A DNA stretch of 64,000 nucleotides from Macrostomum hystrix (lineage: Eukaryota; Animalia; Platyhelminthes): the NCBI GenBank assembly GCA_950097015.1, contig CATNEN010000028.1, positions 682,001 through 746,000 on the forward strand. Direction: 5' to 3'. How positions within the stretch are numbered: the first letter of the stretch is position 1; every line of letters begins with the position of its first letter. The notes beneath the pieces are model-generated. The model made no database searches. It was not told where the DNA came from and was given only the letters and a program-made list of their open reading frames with translations. Shown piece after piece: positions 1,801 through 55,195 of this stretch. The translations under genes were made by a program, and so were the position numbers.

Positions 1801-2430
1801 GCAGTGTTCTTCGGTTGTCCTGGCTACCATACTAATTATGTACCATATTTTTACTGGCTGAAAAAAATGTTCTTATATTAAATCAAACAATGTCAGACTT
1901 TCTAATTCTTTTGCTATTTCTGTCTGTCTTTCTGTTAAATATTTTAATATATTCGTCCTTTACTTAAATCAAATCACTTTTCTGTCATATCTTCTTTTGT
2001 TTAAAATGTTTATTGGAGTTTCTAGAAATGTTTTGCATTCTTTTCAAGATATCTGATGTGCTTACTCATTCTATTTCCTAGATACACATGTCCTAGATAG
2101 TTGCCAATGCGTATTGATTTAAAATTAGTGTAATTTTTTATTCTTAAATTTGATTTTGTTGCAATAGTAATCATAATTTAATAGTTTTGTTATAATATTC
2201 TTGATTTCAATTATAACTATTTTAATTACTCAAGGTTGTGTTAAAGCTGCGTTAAAGCACACAACATACCCCCTTACTTAATTCTGAATTGTAGTCTCTT
2301 GTTATACTCAATACTAAATTGCAGTATTGTCTAGGCTTAACGTTTTTCAAATCGTTTTTTAAGATTAATCATTGCAAGTTTCCATGCAAGTTAGCCAGTT
2401 TGACTCTTCATTGCCATTTTCAAATACTCC

Positions 2431-3660
2431 TTAATGTACACTCTCCCCAAGCCAATCCCAGCCAGTCCTTAATGCGTACACTGTGTCTGAGCCAATCCCA
2501 GCCACTCCTCAGTGTACACTGTGTCTAAGCCAATCCCAGCTACTCCTCAACGTACACTGTGTCTAAGCCAATCCCAACCACTCACCAACGTACACTGTGT
2601 CTAAGCCAATCCCAGCTACTCCTCAATGTACACTGTGTCTAAGCCAATCCCAACCACTCACCAACGTACACTGTGTCTAAGCCAATCCCAGCTACTCCTC
2701 AACGTACACTGTGTCTAAGCCAATCCCAGCTACTCCTCAATGTACACTGTGTCTAAGCCAATCCCAACCACTCATCAACGTACACTGTGTCTAAGCCAAT
2801 CCCAGCTACTCCTCAACGTACACTGTGTCTAAGCCAATCCTAGCTACTCCTCAATGTACACTGTGTCTAAGCCAATCCCAACCACTCACCAACGTACACT
2901 GTGTCTAAGCCAATCCCAGCTACTCCTCAATGTACACTGTGTCTAAGCCAATCCCAACCACTCATAAACGTACATACCCACAGGGTGTATATCGTTAGAC
3001 CCAGCTACTCCTCAATGTACACTGTGTCTAAGCCAATCCCAGCTACTCCTCAATGTACACTGTGTCTAAGCCAATCCCAGCTACTCCTCAACGTACACTG
3101 TGTCTAAGCCAATCCCAGCTACTCCTCAATGTACACTGTGTCTAAGCCAATCCCAACCACTCATCAACGTACACTGTGTCTAAGCCAATCCCAGCTACTC
3201 CTCAACGTACACTGTGTCTAAGCCAATCCTAGCTACTCCTCAATGTACACTGTGTCTAAGCCAATCCCAACCACTCACCAACGTACACTGTGTCTAAGCC
3301 AATCCCAGTTTCTCCTCAATGTACACTGTGTCTAAGCCAATCCCAACCACTCATAAACGTACATACCCACAGGGTGTATATCGTTAGACCCAGCTACTCC
3401 TCAATGTACACTGTGTCTAAGCCAATCCCAGCTACTCCTCAATGTACACTGTGTCTAAGCCAATCCCAGCTACTCCTCAACGTACACTGTGTCTAAGCCA
3501 ATCCCAGCTACTCCTCAATGTACACTGTGTCTAAGCCAATCCCAACCACTCATCAACGTACACTGTGTCTAAGCCAATCCCAGCTACTCCTCAATGTACA
3601 CTGTGTCTAAGCCAATCCCAACCACTTATAAACGTACATACCCACAGGGTGTATATCGTT
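2431..3660. repeat. 38-bp minisatellite (tgtacactgtgtctaagccaatcccagctactcctcaa) with higher-order duplication
   Basis: Tandem units. The flank sequence acatacccacagggtgtatatcgtt recurs at about 2972, 3361 and 3636. Confidence 0.93.
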
Positions 3661-19642: not shown

Positions 19643-20164
19643 CAGCAGCAGTTGAGTGTGTTGTTATTCGGCTTATTTACCGTGAGGCCTGGACTATTTC
19701 AGATCTTAGTTTCTCGCCGCATTTTCAGACTATCAAGCCTTCACCGTTGAGCTATTTATGCTGCGAGAATTAGCTAGATGCGAAAAGGCCAACCCGCCTC
19801 GGTCTTTCTTGCTTTCTGAGGACACCGAGCAGAGTGCTAGAGATAAATGGATGAAGGCAGTAGTATGACAGCCCCACCGCTGCTTTTAAGTGTCGACCAA
19901 CGTTTCTTATGCCCAACTCTATTCTCATCATTCTTTCAGCTGTCTCTATGCTCAGTCCCGCCATTGGTTTCATTTTAAGTGTCTCATTCGCCACACAAAA
20001 CTGTTTACTCGGATTCTAAATTGTCTTGCAATGAGACTGCGCAAATTTACAGTGTGAGATGGCGGTGCAGAGAAACTCTTATATATGAAATCGCATATAT
20101 TAAAAATAGTGCGTCACTTTTTAAATTAACTGCACTGAAGGACTCCATATATTGTCACTTCATT

Positions 20165-21650
20165 GCCATAGAGGTCTGTCACTCCAAAGTCATAGAGGCC
20201 TGGCACTCCATAAATATAGAGGCCTGGCACTCCATTGCCATAGAGGTCTGTCACTCCAAAGTCATAGAGGCCTGGCACTCCATAAATATAGAGGCCTGGC
20301 ACTCCATTGCCATAGAGGTCTGTCACTCCAAAGTCATAGAGGCATGGCACTCCATAAATATAGAGGCCTGGCACTCCATTGCCATAGAGGTCTGTCACTC
20401 CAAAGTCATAGAGGCCTGGCACTCCATAAATATAGAGGCCTGGCACTCCATAAATATAGAGGCCTGGCACTCCATTGCCATAGAGGTCTGTCACTCCAAA
20501 GTCATAGAGGCCTGGCACTCCATAAATATAGAGGCCTGGCACTCCATTGCCATAGAGGTCTGTCACTCCAAAGTCATAGAGGTCTGTCACTCCAAAGTCA
20601 TAGAGGCATGGCACTCCATAAATATAGAGGCCTGGCACTCCATTGCCATAGAGGTCTGTCACTCCAAAGTCATAGAGGCCTGGCACTCCATAAATATAGA
20701 GGCCTGGCACTCCATAAATATAGAGGCCTGGCACTCCATTGCCATAGAGGTCTGTCACTCCAAAGTCATAGAGGCATGGCACTCCATAAATATAGAGGCC
20801 TGGCACTCCATAAATATAGAGGCCTGGCACTCCATTGCCATAGAGGTCTGTCACTCCAAAGTCATAGAGGCATGGCACTCCATAAATATAGAGGCCTGGC
20901 ACTCCATAAATATAGAGGCCTGGCACTCCATTGCCATAGAGGTCTGTCACTCCAAAGTCATAGAGGCATGGCACTCCATAAATATAGAGGCCTGGCACTC
21001 CATTGCCATAGAGGTCTGTCACTCCAAAGTCATAGAGGCATGGCACTCCATAAATATAGAGGCCTGGCACTCCATAAATATAGAGGCCTGGCACTCCATT
21101 GCCATAGAGGTCTGTCACTCCAAAGTCATAGAGGCATGGCACTCCATAAATATAGAGGCCTGGCACTCCATTGCCATAGAGGTCTGTCACTCCAAAGTCA
21201 TAGAGGCCTGGCACTCCATAAATATAGAGGCCTGGCACTCCATTGCCATAGAGGTCTGTCACTCCAAAGTCATAGAGGCATGGCACTCCATTGCCATAGA
21301 GGTCTGTCACTCCAAAGTCATAGAGGCATGGCACTCCATAAATATAGAGGCCTGTCACTCCAAAGTCATAGAGGCCTGGCACTCCATAAATATAGAGGCC
21401 TGTCACTACAAAGTCATAGAGGCATGGCACTCCATAAATATAGAGGCCTGTCACTCCAAAGTCATAGAGGCCTGGCACTCCGTAAATATAGAGGTCTGTC
21501 ACTACAAAGTCATAGAGGCATGGCACTCCATAAATATAGAGGCCTGTCACTCCAAAGTCATAGAGGCCTGGCACTCCGTAAATATAGAGGTCTGTCACTA
21601 CAAAGTCATAGAGGCCTGGCACTCCATTGCCATTGAGGTCTGTCACTCCA
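20165..21650. repeat. 24-bp minisatellite with three interspersed monomer variants
   Basis: Monomers gaggtctgtcactccaaagtcata, gaggcctggcactccataaatata and gaggcctggcactccattgccata. Confidence 0.95.
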
Positions 21651-22117
21651 TTTCAGTAGTTGATGATGCCTCACAATAATCATGCATATAACTATCTGAA
21701 GATCATGCACTGCTGAGAAATTCCATTCAGTCAGAATGCACAAATTGATCATCGAATATCCTAACAGTGCAGCGCAGTTTCTACTTGCAGCCGCGGATAA
21801 TAGCCAACAATGTCAACATAAGAACAAGCAGATTAAAGGCAAGATTATTAAGCACTGAGCACCGCAAACTCAGCTTAGATTAGTGGATTAGAGAGGCTGG
21901 TCCAGTGCCGAGAGGCGCCGGTGATTATTAGGCTGGATTAGCGCCTTAATCCACATTGCTATATGCCAAGTAGGTTATCAAATAGACTGCTAGACGTTTT
22001 TGGGGTGAAGAATGGATTAAAAATTAATCTGCACAGTCTCATCTTTAAGAATTTTTTGTCTCTCTCTTTAGTTTCCTATAGCTCCCATTCATGCCAACCT
22101 CCAAGTCACGGTTTGGA

Positions 22118-23343: not shown

Positions 23344-24035
23344 TCACACACGGCTATCTCAGATTCGAACTTGGGTGATTCAGCCGATAACCAGCACATA
23401 GCATTTCCAATCACTCCATCATATTCCTGCGTAGATATATGTTCCCATGTAGGTCGTATTTTTTATATTTGGCTCTCTTTGTTGTTACCAGTGAATGGCT
23501 TTTAGCCAAACAGTCTTACAATCTTAATACATAGAAAACTGGTCTATTCGTAGTTAATTAAAATTAGGAAAGTTGAATCTCTTATTTGTGAGCATAGCTA
23601 TTGATAGCGGAATGAATAAAGTTAACGGCCTCACTATCAAGTATATAGTAGCAAATTAATAATACATAGATATGATAAAGTCATTCTGAATGAGACGGGA
23701 CAGCTTCTTCCAATAGTGTCTCCTCCAATCTCCCCCATCCCCTCGTTTGCATCCCCTTCCAGATTGAGTCGGCTCTGGAGTTTCAACCAATGGCCGGGAT
23801 TCGCAATATAAAAAAAATTGTCCATAAATTTCTGGCCACATCTGGACGAGCTGAGATTCTTCACTTTAGTGGAGTTCGCAGTCAATTTGGAGTTGGTTAT
23901 CTTTCGCGTCAAACTGGTTCTTCGTTAACCAACTGCAGGTGAGTAAAATATGAATGAGTTCTTTATGTCTGCCAGTCGGCACTAATTCATAATTGCTATA
24001 TTGATTCACTGCAACATTGGCTCCTCACAGGCACC

Positions 24036-25153
24036 ATGAGATTTGCCGCGCAGGTTCTGGTAGCGCTTATGTTTGCCACGGCTGCATCTGGTCTTATTGA
24101 GGCAGCATTCGCACCTGCCGATGCAGACTCGGGTGAGTTCGATCTAGAACTATACAACTATAAAAAAATCCCATTTTCTTTAACTCCCAAAATGACTTAC
24201 TTGGCATTCACCAAATGTCAAAGTGATGGATAAAATTGGTAAATCATTATGAACAGAATCAGAAATTTCTGATCTGACAGATTTGTGTCAGAAATCCGAT
24301 TTAGAATGAGACTGAAATTTGACACGATCCACAAATTGGCAATTATCATTTCAATGTGCTCAAATTACACGAGATGAAATCGTAAATACTTCGATAACTC
24401 GTTGATAGAATACCTTTTTAAGGCGTAGCTTTAGTGATTCGTTCACGTTTTTTTACAAATGAGTTCCAGCGAATTTGAAAATTTCTATACATTTTGACAC
24501 CCCTGTGAAATAAAAAAAAACACAAAGAATAGTCACGCGAGAGACAAGACGGGAGAGATAAGACACGGGAGAGACAAGATAGCTAGGAGAGAGACAAGAC
24601 ATGAGAGAGATGAGACACAGGAAAGATGAGACAGGGAAGAGATGAGACAGGGGAGAGATGAGACGGAAAAGACGAGACACAGGAGAGATAAGATAAGGGA
24701 GAGATGAGATGAGACCCCAGAAAGATTAGAGACGGGAGAGATGAGACCAGGAATAAATGAGATGAGAGGGAGAGATATGAGAAACGAAAGCGATGATTAT
24801 TTTTAATTAAAAAAGCCTTCAAACTACTCATCAACCGGCCGAACCAGTAGTATGAAGCACCGCCTCTGCTCCGTCTCGCATCAACAGACGAGCAACAGCA
24901 GCAACAGCAGCAGCAGCAGCAGCTGGTGGCCGGCAGAAACTTTGTCAGTCTATTTGACAAGCGCGGAGTGGAGCTCACCGGTGACATGTACTGCTGCCTG
25001 AACAGCATCCCCGGCTGCTGTCGCCGACGCCGCCGTCGCTCTATTCAAGAGCAGCCAGATGTGCTGGCTGCCTGCGGCTGCTGTCGGCGAAGTTCGTTCT
25101 CCGCTGAGTCGGCCTGCTGCCGCGTCTGCGCGAGTCTATTGTCAGAAGCTTGA
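24036..25153 (+). CDS. Secreted cysteine-rich prepropeptide, 120 aa (signal peptide, polyQ pro-region, KR and R6 cleavage sites)
   Basis: 5' UTR intron 23939-24030 (CAG|GTGAGT...ctcctcacag|). Exons 24036-24132 (G|GTGAGT) and 24888-25153 (catcaacag|), phase 1. Product MRFAAQVLVALMFATAASG...DEQ10LVAGRNFVSLFDKR GVELTGDMYCCLNSIPGCC RRRRRR SIQEQPDVLAACGCCRRSSFSAESACCRVCASLLSEA. Confidence 0.82.
24538..24780. repeat. GA-rich degenerate tandem repeat (gagatgagacagggagag) in the peptide-gene intron
   Basis: Purine-rich repeats related to 25420-26411. Confidence 0.8.
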
Positions 25154-25419
25154 CGAATGGATTTGATGGACAAACAGACCCCACAGAATGTGCAAAATGT
25201 GTGTTTGTGTGTCCGGGTCATTCTAATCTGTTTGTTATCTGCACTTTTGAAGAACTCTGTCTAACAGTTATTAACTACTATTTCACGCAAAGTCAAGGAT
25301 TCCTAATAATAAACCTCACGGAATCGAGAGACATTGCGACAGGGTTTTAGTTCTCCGTCTTTAATTTATCGACTGAGGACTTCGTGCAGCGTGAAAACTG
25401 AACCTCATCGAGTGCAAGT

Positions 25420-26411
25420 GATGAGAATGGGAAGAGATGCGACAGGGAAGAAATAAGACAGGGGAGGGATGAGACAGGGAAGAAATAAGACAGGGGAGGG
25501 ATGAGACAGGGAAGAGATGAGCAAAGAAGAGATGAGACGGAAAATAGATAAGACAGGGCAGAAATGAGACACAGGAGAGATGAAAAGGGGAGAAATGAGA
25601 CACAGGAGAGATGAAAAGGGGAGAGATGAGACACGGAGAGATGAGATAGGGGAGAAATGAGACACAGGAGAGATGAAAAGGGGAGAGATGAGACACGGAG
25701 AGATGAGACACAGAAGAGATAAAAAGGAGAGAGATGAGACAGGGGAGAAATGAGACACAGGAGAGATGAAAAGGGGAGAGATGAGATACAGGAGAGATGA
25801 AAAGGGGAGAAATGAGACACAGGAGAGATGAAAAGGGGAGAGATGAGACACAGAAGAGATGAAAAGGAGAGAGATGAGACGGGAGAAATGAGACACAGGA
25901 GAGATGAAAAGGGGAGAGATGAGACAGGGGAGAGATGAGACAGGGGAGATGAAAAGGGGAGAGATGAGACACAGAAGAGATGAAAAGGAGAGAGATGAGA
26001 CAGGGGAGAAATGAGACACAGGAGAGATGAAAAGGGGAGAAATGAGACACAGGAGAGATGAAAAGGGGAGAAATGAGACACAGGAGAGATGAAAAGGGGA
26101 GAGATGAGACACAGAAGAGATGAAAAGGAGAGAGATGAGACAGGGGAGAGATGAGACACGGGAGAGATGAGACACGGAGAGATGAGACACGGAGAGATGA
26201 GACAGGGGAGAGATGAGACATGGAGAGATGAGACAAGCGATAAAGGAGACAGTGGAGAGTTGAGACACGGGAGATGAGACACGGGAGATGAGACACGGGA
26301 GATGAGACACGGGAGATGAGACACGGGAGAGATGAGACATGGAGAGATGAGACAGGGGAGAGATGAGACATGGAGAGATGAGACACGGGAGATGAGACAC
26401 GGGAGAGATGA
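25420..26411. repeat. GA-rich compound minisatellite (gagatgagacacaggagagatgaaaagggga)
   Basis: Tandem periodicity. Explains the SHLS/VSSLP pseudo-ORFs. Confidence 0.93.
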
Positions 26412-26559
26412 GTCGGTCTGAACTAGTATAGGCAGTCCTGGGGAATCAGTTCTAGAAACAAAATCAGAGTCATGCCTGAGTAAGCTGCCTATAGCTTGAT
26501 CGATTCAAGAGCCGCGGGAAACAACTATTGATAACTTGTTCGCCAAATTACCATCGACA

Positions 26560-27655
26560 AATGCGGATCAACCGTCATTAAGCTCCAAGGTATAGACTGA
26601 AAGACTTCGTTATATATATTCCAAAAATTACCATGATTTTCCTAATCTTATCGATTTCTGTGGTAATGTAGCTCGCTTTAAAAGTAGCAAAAGAGCAAAC
26701 GTCAAAACAAACATTGATTCTATTTAAACTGCCGACGCGTTTCGTCCAAAGCGGACATCTTCAGGGCAAACAAGCCGTTTGCCCGAAAACCGAAAATGTA
26801 TTTAAATTGAATCGAAAAAAATATTGAGCGAACAAAACATGTACATTCTGTAAACTTTTATATCAACGAACCAATCAGTGAAGAGGGTGCATCCACCTCA
26901 CCACCGCGCACAACGAGATAAAAAAATTCAGAGTTGCTGCTCTCACAAGCTGAACGTTCAAGCTTGGGTTGTACTTCCTAATTTACCTAGCTTCCAACAA
27001 TTTTAGCTTTTTATCGTTGTTACATCCATCCATCACCTTGAACAACTGCATAGGCTCACAGTCACAACACGCCTTGCACACGAATAGGTGGTCTTTAGTG
27101 GCCGAAGACGCAAGCCAGTGCTCCCTCACCCTCTTGTGCAGATGCCGTTTCGTTTTTCCGATATAGGAAACACCCTGATCAACAGAGCATTGAAGTTGAT
27201 AGACGACACCAGCCTTCAGAGGGAGAGGAACACTAGATTTGACCCTGCTCGCGTAGCGCGCAATCTTTTCAGTCGTGAACACAACTGTAATTTTGCAATT
27301 GAGCAGTCTAAAAAACCTCTTTTCTAACTTATTTTTAAAATCAATCGAAGCGGATCCAAGAAATGGTAAAATCATCAGCGAGACCGAAGAGTCCGTCTCT
27401 GAGCCTTTCCCGTGTTGCAAGCAGGACACTTTTTCAGAAACAAACCGGTTAAAAATACGGCTAACAAACTCAAACGGATAGCCATTCGATTTAAGGGTTC
27501 TAGTCAGAGAAATGACTTCCTGATGGAACAGCGCCCAAGAACTGCAAACAACATAAGCCCTGTGAAGCAAACACCTAACCAGACCAGATTTCCATTGGAT
27601 TGGGCAAAGCGCATTGAAATTCAGCATTAAGCCAGTAAACGTGGGTTTATCGATT
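26560..27655 (-). mobile_element. Penelope-like retroelement, 5'-truncated (RT thumb plus GIY-YIG endonuclease), inactivated
   Basis: KPTFTGLMLNF...WKSGLVRCLLHRAY...NGYP (thumb), then GVVYQLQC...SYIGKTKRHLHKRVREH (GIY-YIG). A TAG interrupts LLEAR*IRKYNPSLN at 26985-26983. A hammerhead lies in the 3' region. The outer boundary is approximate. Confidence 0.9.
26729..26769 (-). ncRNA. Minimal type I hammerhead ribozyme
   Basis: Minus strand: UUGCC CUGAAGA U GUCC-gcuuu-GGAC GAAA CGCG UC GGCAG. Intact core, helix II, palindromic ACGCGU helix III, and helix I UUGCC/GGCAG. Predicted GUC cleavage between 26734 and 26733. Confidence 0.88.
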
Positions 27656-38946: not shown

Positions 38947-40018
38947 GTGTCACTCTGTCACCATGTCACTCTGTCACCATGTCACCATGTCACTCTGTCA
39001 CCATGTCACTCTGTCACCATGTCACCATGTCACTCTGTCACCATGTCACTCTGTCACCATGTCACTCTGTCACCATGTCACTCTGTCACCATGTCACTCT
39101 GTCACCATGTCACTCTGTCACCATGTCACTCTGTCACCATGTCACTCTGTCACCATGTCACCATGTCACTCTGTCACCATGTCACTCTGTCACTCTGTCA
39201 CCATGTCACTCTGTCACCATGTCACTCTGTCACCATGTCACTCTGTCACCATGTCACTCTGTCACCATGTCACTCTGTCACCATGTCACTCTGTCACCAT
39301 GTCACTCTGTCACCATGTCACTCTGTCACCATGTCACTCTGTCACCATGTCACTCTGTCACCATGTCACTCTGTCACCATGTCACTCTGTCACCATGTCA
39401 CTCTGTCACCATGTCACTCTGTCACCATGTCACTCTGTCACCATGTCACTCTGTCACCATGTCACTCTGTCACCATGTCACTCTGTCACCATGTCACTCT
39501 GTCACCATGTCACTCTGTCACCATGTCACTCTGTCACCATGTCACTCTGTCACCATGTCACTCTGTCACCATGTCACTCTGTCACCATGTCACTCTGTCA
39601 CCATGTCACTCTGTCACCATGTCACTCTGTCACCATGTCACCATGTCACTCTGTCACCATGTCACTCTGTCACCATGTCACTCTGTCACCATGTCACTCT
39701 GTCACCATGTCACTCTGTCACCATGTCACTCTGTCACCATGTCACTCTGTCACCATGTCACTCTGTCACCATGTCACTCTGTCACCATGTCACTCTGTCA
39801 CCATGTCACTCTGTCACCATGTCACTCTGTCACCATGTCACTCTGTCACCATGTCACTCTGTCACCATGTCACTCTGTCACCATGTCACTCTGTCACCAT
39901 GTCACCATGTCACTCTGTCACCATGTCACTCTGTCACCATGTCACTCTGTCACCATGTCACTCTGTCACCATGTCACTCTGTCACCATGTCACTCTGTCA
40001 CCATGTCACTCTGTCACT
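38947..40018. repeat. 16-bp minisatellite (gtcaccatgtcactct), highly homogeneous
   Basis: Tandem periodicity. Confidence 0.96.
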
Positions 40019-40840
40019 TCAGTGCATCTCCACCTCTAAGTGATCAGAGGTTTCCAATAAACACGCACCAATGCATTCAAAAGTGCTCCCCCTGCAAGCA
40101 ATGGTTTCAGTCAGTTCTACCCCAAGCGCAGATGTACTTATCCAGAGTGCAGAATCCAGCTCCATCATATGCGAGCTGCCCGGAGGCTGCATTTACAGAT
40201 TTCCTCACCAATAGGTATGAGCGACACTGGATTTGCCGTTCTCAAAACTATGCAGAAATCGCCATCTGAAGTACTCAAACACGGCAGCTGGTATTGAGAT
40301 TATGCTCCGGGCAACCTCAAGGTGTGATGTGAACACCCACGTGATATTTTCGCTACCCCCCAAAGCGTCAGATCTGCAGCATCAAATCCAAAGCCCATTG
40401 CTGCTTCTAGAAGCAGGACAGAAGCTGGCACAACAGGAGCAACAGGGAGGGGGTCCTTCTTCAGTTTTCCTTCTCTGCCACTCGTTCAGACATCCCAAAA
40501 CGGGCGGTTTGTCGCGGCCTTCTCCGGGGAAATTAGGAAACTTGACTTTGGCAAGTGGTGCCAAAAGAACCTGTTCCCCATTCCCTTATTGCATTTCATC
40601 CCAAAAGATGTAGTCCTCTCAAGCAATAGTACTCCCATACCCCCCTAGCGCCCAGGACTTTCATTCTCCAATTCCTGATTGGCTGGATTTGCTTCTCGAA
40701 TTGGACTTTAGCGATCCAGCGTTCCACTCACGGCATCGGTCAACTAGCAGCGAGTCTATTTAGCTATTACAGAACCCCGGACCTTATCAGACAGCGGCAA
40801 CAATTAACAGAAGCCAAATAAAAAGCAGACTTAAAAACAG

Positions 40841-54202: not shown

Positions 54203-55195
54203 ATGGATTCGTCAAATTCAACAAACCTGACTCTGAGCAAAGCCGGCATCGCATCCGGCAGCCTCGCACAGACATTGCTGCTAGCTTGCCGGGCCCACCT
54301 CCTAGCAGCTGGACTCGTGTTGAACTGTCTCTGCCTGGCTGCCACCATCATTCCCAGAGGGCGCCTCGGCGGCTCCGCCAACCGGACAGCGGGCCGACTG
54401 CTCGGACATCAGTTCTGCATCGATGCCTGGATCTGCCTTCTGTGCCTGCTGAACTCCCCGGGCCTGCTGCCCGACTTTACCGGCTACGGCGGGCCGGCCG
54501 TTTGCTACCTGTGGCACACCCAGACTGTCTACTGGGCCATTGTGGCCCTGGGAGTCGGCAATCTGCTGCTAATCAGCTGGGAGAGATTCACGGCGGTCGT
54601 CAGGCCGATTCACTATCGCTCCTCGGCGAAGACTGTCGGCGCATTCGCCTGTCAACTGGCGGGCATCTACTGCGCCGCCGGCTGTCTGGCCCTGCCGACG
54701 GCTCTCTACGTGCGCTTCGATTCGGCTGCGGGCGTCTGCCGACTGGGCGAATCGGCAATTCAGTCCGCTACGCTTGACAATCTACTCATGGGCCACTCCG
54801 TGCTCTGGTTTCTTGGCGTCTACCTAGGTCCCGTGGTTGCCATGGCGTTCATGCAGGCTCGAGTTGTGGTCGCAGTCAGGGCGACGCCATGCGGTCGAGC
54901 GGCTTTGGAGCTGACTCGAACCGCCGTAGCAGCTACCGTTCTATTCGCGGCCACCTTCGCGCTGGACTCATTCTACTACCTGATTGGCTCGCTAACGCCT
55001 GGCATTCGATACGAGCTCAACTCGCCTCTGCAGATAGTCAGCAGCTTCCTGGTGACGCTGAACTCCTGCGTCAATGCCCCTGTCTGCCTCGTTGGCGTTC
55101 GACGCCTGCGGATTCGGCTGCATCGACTGCTCACCTGCGGCGGCGTTGCTCCCGGCGGCGTTGTGGGTCCGGAGACAGTCGAGTCCGAGTTCTGA
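54203..55195 (+). CDS. Intronless class A (rhodopsin-like) orphan GPCR, 330 aa
   Basis: Seven hydrophobic segments, N-terminal NST/NLT sequons, TM3 ISWERFTAVVRPIHY, Cys at the top of TM3 and in ECL2, TM7 LNSCVNAPVC. Confidence 0.85.
   Translation: MDSSNSTNLTLSKAGIASGSLAQTLLLACRAHLLAAGLVLNCLCLAATIIPRGRLGGSANRTAGRLLGHQFCIDAWICLLCLLNSPGLLPDFTGYGGPAVCYLWHTQTVYWAIVALGVGNLLLISWERFTAVVRPIHYRSSAKTVGAFACQLAGIYCAAGCLALPTALYVRFDSAAGVCRLGESAIQSATLDNLLMGHSVLWFLGVYLGPVVAMAFMQARVVVAVRATPCGRAALELTRTAVAATVLFAATFALDSFYYLIGSLTPGIRYELNSPLQIVSSFLVTLNSCVNAPVCLVGVRRLRIRLHRLLTCGGVAPGGVVGPETVESEF

Follow-up and report, generated by a model that had tools for sequence, protein, structure and literature searches.

Two vicinal cysteine pairs with a short loop between them, carried by a precursor composed of signal peptide, pro-region and mature peptide, characterise the framework V conotoxins of the T superfamily. 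In conotoxins, the signal and pro-regions are conserved and the mature toxin is hypervariable. The insulin/relaxin peptides follow another spacing, C-x(10-12)-C in the B chain and CC-x3-C-x8-C in the A chain. Invertebrate neuropeptide precursors are organized around a conserved peptide that is bounded by KR and RR-type sites and outconserves the rest of the precursor. Their genes are small, with three exons; the first coding exon specifies a signal peptide, and the acidic spacer is little conserved. The lophotrochozoan families of such precursors have been catalogued (PMC3890597, PMC6425005, PMC8557429). Two cysteine-containing groups among them are of interest here, namely the CLCCY precursors of Platynereis, Capitella and Aplysia, with the knottin-like spacing C-x6-C-x6-CC-x4-C (PMC3890597), and the CCWamide/agatoxin-like peptides, with eight conserved cysteines and an amidated aromatic C-terminus (PMC8557429). 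In both groups the precursor is short and leads from a signal peptide, over a spacer that is not conserved, to a single cleavage site, behind which one cysteine-rich peptide forms the C-terminus.

In this study, we describe a gene of the flatworm Macrostomum hystrix that lies in a stretch of 64,000 nucleotides of genomic DNA (the window) and that very probably encodes a genuine secreted precursor of a conserved 19-residue peptide with the cysteine pattern CC-x6-CC. The gene belongs to a small family with two types of members, type 1 with a second cysteine region at the C-terminus and type 2 without it; the window gene is of type 1. Its features are as follows (window positions; the slash marks a splice joint).

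23787–23814, + strand: putative core promoter, as read from the sequence, with CCAAT at 23787–23791 and TATAAAAA at 23807–23814
23840–23938, + strand: non-coding leader exon; 5′ end approximate, 3′ end at 23938, donor CAG/GTGAGT
23939–24030, + strand: 5′ UTR intron of 92 nt, GT..AG, its joint present in an RNA-derived contig; GC 0.38 versus 0.46–0.61 in the exons
24036–24132, + strand: coding exon 1, with the ATG, the predicted signal peptide and the start of the acidic pro-region; 32 codons and 1 base
24133–24887, + strand: phase-1 intron of 755 nt, GT..AG, placed by its splice sites; holds a 16/32-nt GAGATGAGACA-type minisatellite at 24535–24762
24888–24958, + strand: spacer/pro-region, with Asp-Glu, Q10 (CAG/CAA repeat) and 12 residues up to the cleavage site
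24959–24964, + strand: Lys-Arg, predicted convertase cleavage site, invariant in 6/6 family sequences
24965–25021, + strand: 19-residue peptide GVELTGDMYCCLNSIPGCC; the CC-x6-CC part is 24992–25021
25022–25039, + strand: hexa-arginine run, directly after the second cysteine pair; an Arg-rich run stands here in all family members
25040–25150, + strand: C-terminal region of 37 residues with six cysteines, C-x-CC-RR-x8-CC-x2-C; type-1 genes only
25151–25331, + strand: stop codon (TGA, 25151–25153) and 3′ UTR, with AATAAA at 25308–25313; RNA-derived contigs end at 25315 and 25331

The three exons encode a predicted precursor of about 120 residues, with ten cysteines in total. The donor after 24132 reads GTGAGT and the acceptor, ...CAACAG/AC, opens the last exon at 24888; as coding exon 1 contributes 97 nt, the intron is in phase 1 and an Asp codon is split G/AC. 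The exons have a G+C content of 46–61%, and the introns and the 3′ UTR one of 38–39%. The predicted signal peptide begins with MR and continues with a 15-residue hydrophobic core (maximum Kyte-Doolittle value 2.27), small residues occupying −3 and −1 for a heuristic cut after position 19; a hydrophobic N-terminus with such heuristic features is present in all four genes of the family, that is, the window gene, its paralogue and their orthologues, in keeping with the signal peptide that an initial annotation of the window had proposed. On re-reading, the statements of that annotation on the sequence (exon ends, KR, 19-mer, R6, tail and stop codon) all proved correct. It had also remarked that the list of open reading frames holds the gene only as two separate fragments, which is indeed the case (24036–24233, and 24926–25153 with a GTG start).

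Public sequencing runs provide the evidence for expression. Seven of them contain part of the window and four were aligned to it. In three runs, all from one study, the RNA-derived contigs match the window at 100% identity and are confined to the exons (24028–24132 and 24937–25315/25331), with zero coverage, in the aligned runs, of the unique intron sequence at 24176–24495 and 24752–24879 or of the DNA outside the gene. Since coverage falls on the exons and is absent from unique intron, these runs carry RNA-derived sequence. The joint of the leader intron is seen directly in one contig, which passes from about 23935 to about 24028 and thereby omits 92 nt bounded by GT..AG. Over coding exon 1, the contigs leave the genome exactly at 24132 and continue for 33 further letters that differ from the intron, and the joint of 24132 to 24888 is strongly implied; it is not displayed because the CAG repeat at 24887–24936 is masked in the read alignment, where reads seem to be cut, and transcript assemblies break at the Q10 run (24891–24923). 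The contigs end 2–18 nt past the AATAAA signal and, on the 5′ side, CCAAT and TATAAAAA precede by about 30–90 nt the first transcribed bases seen (a contig start near 23896). The locus is a real, transcribed and spliced gene, as the initial annotation had supposed. A further contig, which carries a second organism code and comes from a 2024 study, spans 25031–25256, from the last part of the coding sequence into the 3′ UTR, and shows three differences, all in the 3′ UTR (25186, 25198 and 25205); its source is another strain or a species very close to this one.

The same genome holds one paralogue, on contig C38 (G000:C38:17492072-17495191), with its own predicted signal peptide, a phase-1 intron at the equivalent place, KR, GIELTGNIHCCLRNIAVCC, R9 and a nine-residue tail, the second cysteine region being absent. 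A motif scan found no third family member in the genome: the pattern E-L-T-G-x3-CC gives seven hits, among which only two are true genes, and the pattern CC-x6-CC-RR is swamped by CTG/CAG repeats. A third genome match was discarded as poly-Q similarity only, and two further matches as poly-Arg only. An exhaustive HMMER profile search of 1.84 billion protein representatives returned two true relatives (E 2.5e-17 and 1.5e-9), both annotated as "hypothetical proteins" in Macrostomum lignano, and each of the two M. hystrix genes has one of them as its orthologue. For the window gene this is the Mlig027086 protein (BOX15_Mlig027086g1-3; 115 aa), with KR, GVELAGDMYCCVNGIPGCC, R6 and the six-cysteine tail, and for the paralogue it is the Mlig010892 protein (BOX15_Mlig010892g1-2 / Mlig031427g1; 106 aa), with KR, GIELPGNIHCCVNGIAGCC, RRKRRIRRRR and a short tail. 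Both M. lignano genes have a single coding intron, in phase 1, that splits the Asp codon at the same place, and intron position and phase are thus common to all four genes. A 202-aa M. lignano entry was rejected as a longer protein, being a read-through translation of UTRs. These two proteins, annotated merely as hypothetical or uncharacterised, are the closest known entities; they agree with the two M. hystrix genes in exon structure, KR, 19-mer and Arg run and, in type 1, also in the six-cysteine tail.

Searches of other collections brought no further relatives. Pfam gave no match at E<=10 for either exon product (searched separately) or for the orthologues, the PDB profile search was empty, the ESM Atlas offered no usable match, and a word-based protein search with the last-exon product yielded zero candidates; with the six-sequence family alignment, the same kind of search recovered only the two M. 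lignano clusters. A Pfam match of the paralogue to NICE-1 was sub-threshold and compositional, and was set aside. In the portions of the literature that could be consulted, including those of the supplements of Macrostomum RNA-seq and genome papers, the identifiers Mlig027086 and Mlig010892 were not found. Judged by these comparisons, the genes appear to form an undescribed two-gene family of prohormone-type precursors, seen only in Macrostomum, and the two gene types are best read as ancient paralogues. The initial annotation had recognised no described family, which agrees with these results: nothing beyond the uncharacterised M. lignano proteins turned up as relatives. It had also named what would speak against it (no spliced transcript, no signal peptide or a match to a known family), and none of the three was encountered.

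The surroundings of these genes are rich in repeats. In the window, a 16/32-nt GATGAGACAGGGGAGA-type minisatellite occupies part of the intron (24535–24762) and forms a 1-kb array just downstream of the gene (25420–26412); contigs of GATGAGACAGGGGAGA-type repeats reach a summed depth of up to ~1e5 in the RNA-derived runs, which suggests that this satellite family is either strongly transcribed or present in very many copies. The paralogue is flanked by two long arrays of a ~24-nt GGTAGATATTTAGGAGACAGGCTG-type minisatellite in opposite orientations (positions 100–590 and 1850–3120 of its locus), and the intron of the M. lignano orthologue is likewise filled with minisatellite (positions 3090–3580 of its locus). 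Small peptide genes seem to be embedded here in satellite arrays. Other reading frames of the window include an ORF on the minus strand (26983–27624) with a GIY-YIG nuclease domain (E 5.8e-5), which adjoins the satellite array and is possibly the remnant of a Penelope-like retroelement, and two long repeat-built ORFs on the plus strand (19979–21676 and 38963–40036) that fit the Cornifin/SPRR profile (E 7.7e-40 and 7.2e-20) and would be Pro/Cys-rich repeat proteins unless they are translated satellites. At a distance of 29 kb from the peptide gene, an intronless ORF of 330 aa on the plus strand (54203–55192) matches rhodopsin-type GPCRs (7tm_1, E 1.5e-11).

The distribution of conserved residues along the precursor is markedly uneven. 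The family alignment, made of six sequences, keeps KR, G1, E3, L4, G6, the four cysteines, I15 and five arginines invariant, and the consensus of the 19-mer is G-[VI]-E-L-x-G-[DN]-[MI]-[YH]-CC-[LV]-x-x-I-[PA]-x-CC. Between the window gene and its M. lignano orthologue, 16/19 residues of the peptide are identical (dN 0.07, dS 0.78; dN/dS ~0.09), versus 1/12 in the residues before KR, for which dN/dS is not meaningful; in the type-2 pair, the corresponding figures are 14/19 (dN 0.19, with dS saturated) and 0/12, the latter again with no meaningful dN/dS. The signal peptides of the orthologues are dissimilar, and the Q10 run is missing in the M. lignano orthologue, which has QQLRQQK instead; this run (CAG/CAA, 24891–24923) is a lineage-specific expansion of the spacer. 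A conserved peptide surrounded by diverged sequence suggests that the 19-mer is the selected unit and that the signal, the spacer and the Q10 are free to drift. Beyond the peptide, the type-2 genes keep an LEF motif after the Arg run between species. In type 1, the six-cysteine tail (C-x-CC-x10-CC-x2-C in the window gene) keeps its cysteines and the RR/RRR after the first CC in M. lignano, where the gap has 11 residues instead of 10, and is otherwise diverged (6/17 identical around CCxxC). The second cysteine-rich peptide that had been read from the window is therefore present as a pattern in this gene, although it belongs to one of the two gene types and is not a feature of the family. The basic motifs proposed to flank the CC-x6-CC peptide held up well, KR being invariant in 6/6 sequences and the Arg-rich run being found in all members.

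Compared with the systems described above, the gene shares with invertebrate neuropeptide precursors the signal peptide predicted on the first coding exon, the poorly conserved acidic spacer, the small gene of three exons and, above all, a peptide that lies between basic sites and is more conserved than the spacers. In contrast to those precursors, the Macrostomum peptide is single, non-amidated and provided with two vicinal cysteine pairs, it matches no catalogued sequence, its Arg runs comprise 6 to 10 residues rather than a dibasic site, and the family has been seen in one genus. Two common hallmarks of neuropeptides are missing, since the 19-mer lacks a C-terminal Gly for amidation and each precursor contains one copy of it. 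Neither the CLCCY nor the CCWamide precursors, which resemble the present ones in general design, have CC-x6-CC or the G-x-E-L-x-G arm, and neither aligns; identity with CLCCY was rejected since the published spacing resembles neither peptide of the window gene, and identity with the CCWamide/agatoxin-like peptides since the 19-mer has four cysteines and no Gly amidation signal. Insulin/relaxin was likewise rejected on the spacings, CC-x6-CC and C-x-CC-x10-CC-x2-C, and on the lack of a Pfam Insulin match at E<=10. In the case of the framework V conotoxins, the likeness noted in the initial annotation is real as regards the CC-x6-CC spacing and the signal-pro-mature design. It does not extend to a sequence relation, as judged from the Pfam, PDB and HMMER searches, and the evolutionary pattern is the opposite one, with a conserved mature peptide behind a varying signal and spacer. 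Moreover, the flatworm peptide has a conserved N-terminal arm of nine residues, and the Arg run and more sequence follow its CC-CC.

The explanation that we favour, with moderate confidence, is that of a three-exon prohormone-type gene whose peptide is most likely a neuropeptide or peptide hormone. After removal of the signal peptide, subtilisin-like proprotein convertases would cut at the invariant Lys-Arg and inside the arginine run, and a carboxypeptidase would then trim the basic residues. Convertase P-domains are encoded in the genome (13 matches to P_proprotein, PF01483, of which at least two are full-length, at 76 bits). Processing would yield an acidic peptide of 19 residues without amidation, with a predicted mass of 1972.750 Da when two disulphides are formed; these could close inside a single peptide or join two. 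The predicted masses are 2026.921 Da for the paralogue and 3843.657 Da for the 37-residue tail with three disulphides. Since vicinal cysteines seldom pair with one another, the bridges are probably C10-C18/C11-C19 or C10-C19/C11-C18, or else link two peptides. The six-cysteine tail of type 1 may form a disulphide-clamped helical hairpin that is further cut at its internal RR into two linked chains, an idea of little weight that comes from an unreliable AlphaFold2 model of the family alignment (mean pLDDT 55.7). The peptide itself would act on a conserved endogenous target, since strong purifying selection on the 19-mer, in two divergent species and in two old paralogues, points to a conserved endogenous partner, as expected for a neuropeptide or hormone. 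Selection of this kind runs counter to the arms races usual for toxins, immune peptides and seminal-fluid proteins. We thus regard it as fairly probable that the 19-mer is an endogenous signal. The initial annotation had considered a neuropeptide, a toxin or a defence peptide; the undescribed secreted precursor holds, whereas, given the selection on the mature 19-mer, an endogenous signal is a likelier role than that of a toxin or defence peptide.

Among the alternatives, the one that survives best, although we consider it unlikely, is that the gene encodes a gland secretion and not a neural or endocrine product. The secretion might be a peptide that the prostate adds to the seminal fluid, part of an adhesive or of mucus, or a cationic peptide with an antimicrobial or defence role. 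The reproductive glands of Macrostomum make many secreted proteins that are small and orphan, the multibasic RxxR-type runs would suit furin and the constitutive secretory pathway, and an acidic pro-region followed by an Arg-rich product resembles precursors of the defensin type. As a defence peptide, the disulphide-locked product would retain the Arg run, which the acidic pro-region would neutralise until secretion. The 19-mer, however, is itself acidic or neutral (net charge −2 or 0), and in peptides of reproduction, venom and immunity it is usually the mature part that changes rapidly, which is here the slowest part of the precursor.

We find it improbable that the precursor undergoes no internal processing and acts as one small cysteine-rich protein, after removal of the signal peptide or cleavage at KR only. 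Such a protein, in type 1, would contain ten cysteines, and its Arg run would form a basic loop at the surface, with a possible affinity for nucleic acid, glycosaminoglycan or membrane. The cysteine total of type 1 is even, the low-confidence model (mean pLDDT 55.7) sets a hairpin beside a helix-loop-helix, and the LEF kept in the type-2 tail beyond the Arg run would also fit an unprocessed protein. Against this stand the type-2 proteins, which lack the second cysteine region and nevertheless keep KR, the 19-mer and the Arg run, so that the 19-mer must be a self-sufficient unit. In addition, the position of KR before the first invariant residue, together with basic residues after each CC, is the classic convertase layout, and conservation is poor beyond the 19-mer and the cysteine positions.

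The Arg run deserves separate consideration. In every member of the family, 6 to 10 basic residues follow directly after the second CC (R6, R6, R9 and RRKRRIRRRR), a length far beyond what cleavage needs, which suggests a role of its own, outside our main model. The net charges of the pro-region, the Arg run and the tails roughly cancel, as counted from the sequences. The run might serve furin-type processing or charge balance, stay on the product as a cationic tail, or be released as oligo-arginine. That it is more than a cleavage site, either retained as an oligo-Arg tail on what would be a natural cell-penetrating, disulphide-locked peptide or released as a free convertase inhibitor, is in our view a long shot. 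In this regard, multibasic and cell-penetrating peptides are potent furin inhibitors (PMC4482483). If a retained or inhibitory run were the case, the precursor would carry its CC-x6-CC peptide into target cells or control how it is itself processed, and the 19-mer would be the first signalling peptide of endogenous, non-venom nature on the CC-x6-CC scaffold.

Finally, descent from, or functional analogy with, the T-superfamily conotoxins, making this a venom-type peptide, is suggested by the presence of exactly four cysteines as CC-x6-CC behind a predicted signal peptide and a pro-region ending in KR, but the host is a flatworm, searches of Pfam, PDB and protein databases gave no conotoxin match, the peptide does not end the precursor and the conservation pattern is inverted, so that venom-type function is scarcely credible and homology is effectively refuted.

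All together, the gene and its family matter at several levels. The finding illustrates that small spliced peptide genes lying between satellite arrays are missed by annotation or left as "hypothetical", and the conserved oligo-arginine runs pose a question of processing or function. As a flatworm model, Macrostomum is tractable by RNAi, in situ hybridisation and transgenesis. Being a conserved and expressed orphan family whose predicted product has 1972.75 Da, these genes lend themselves directly to peptidomics, localisation, knock-down and receptor de-orphanisation. The flatworm repertoire would gain a double vicinal-cysteine peptide, whose scaffold has until now been linked with the toxins of cone snails.
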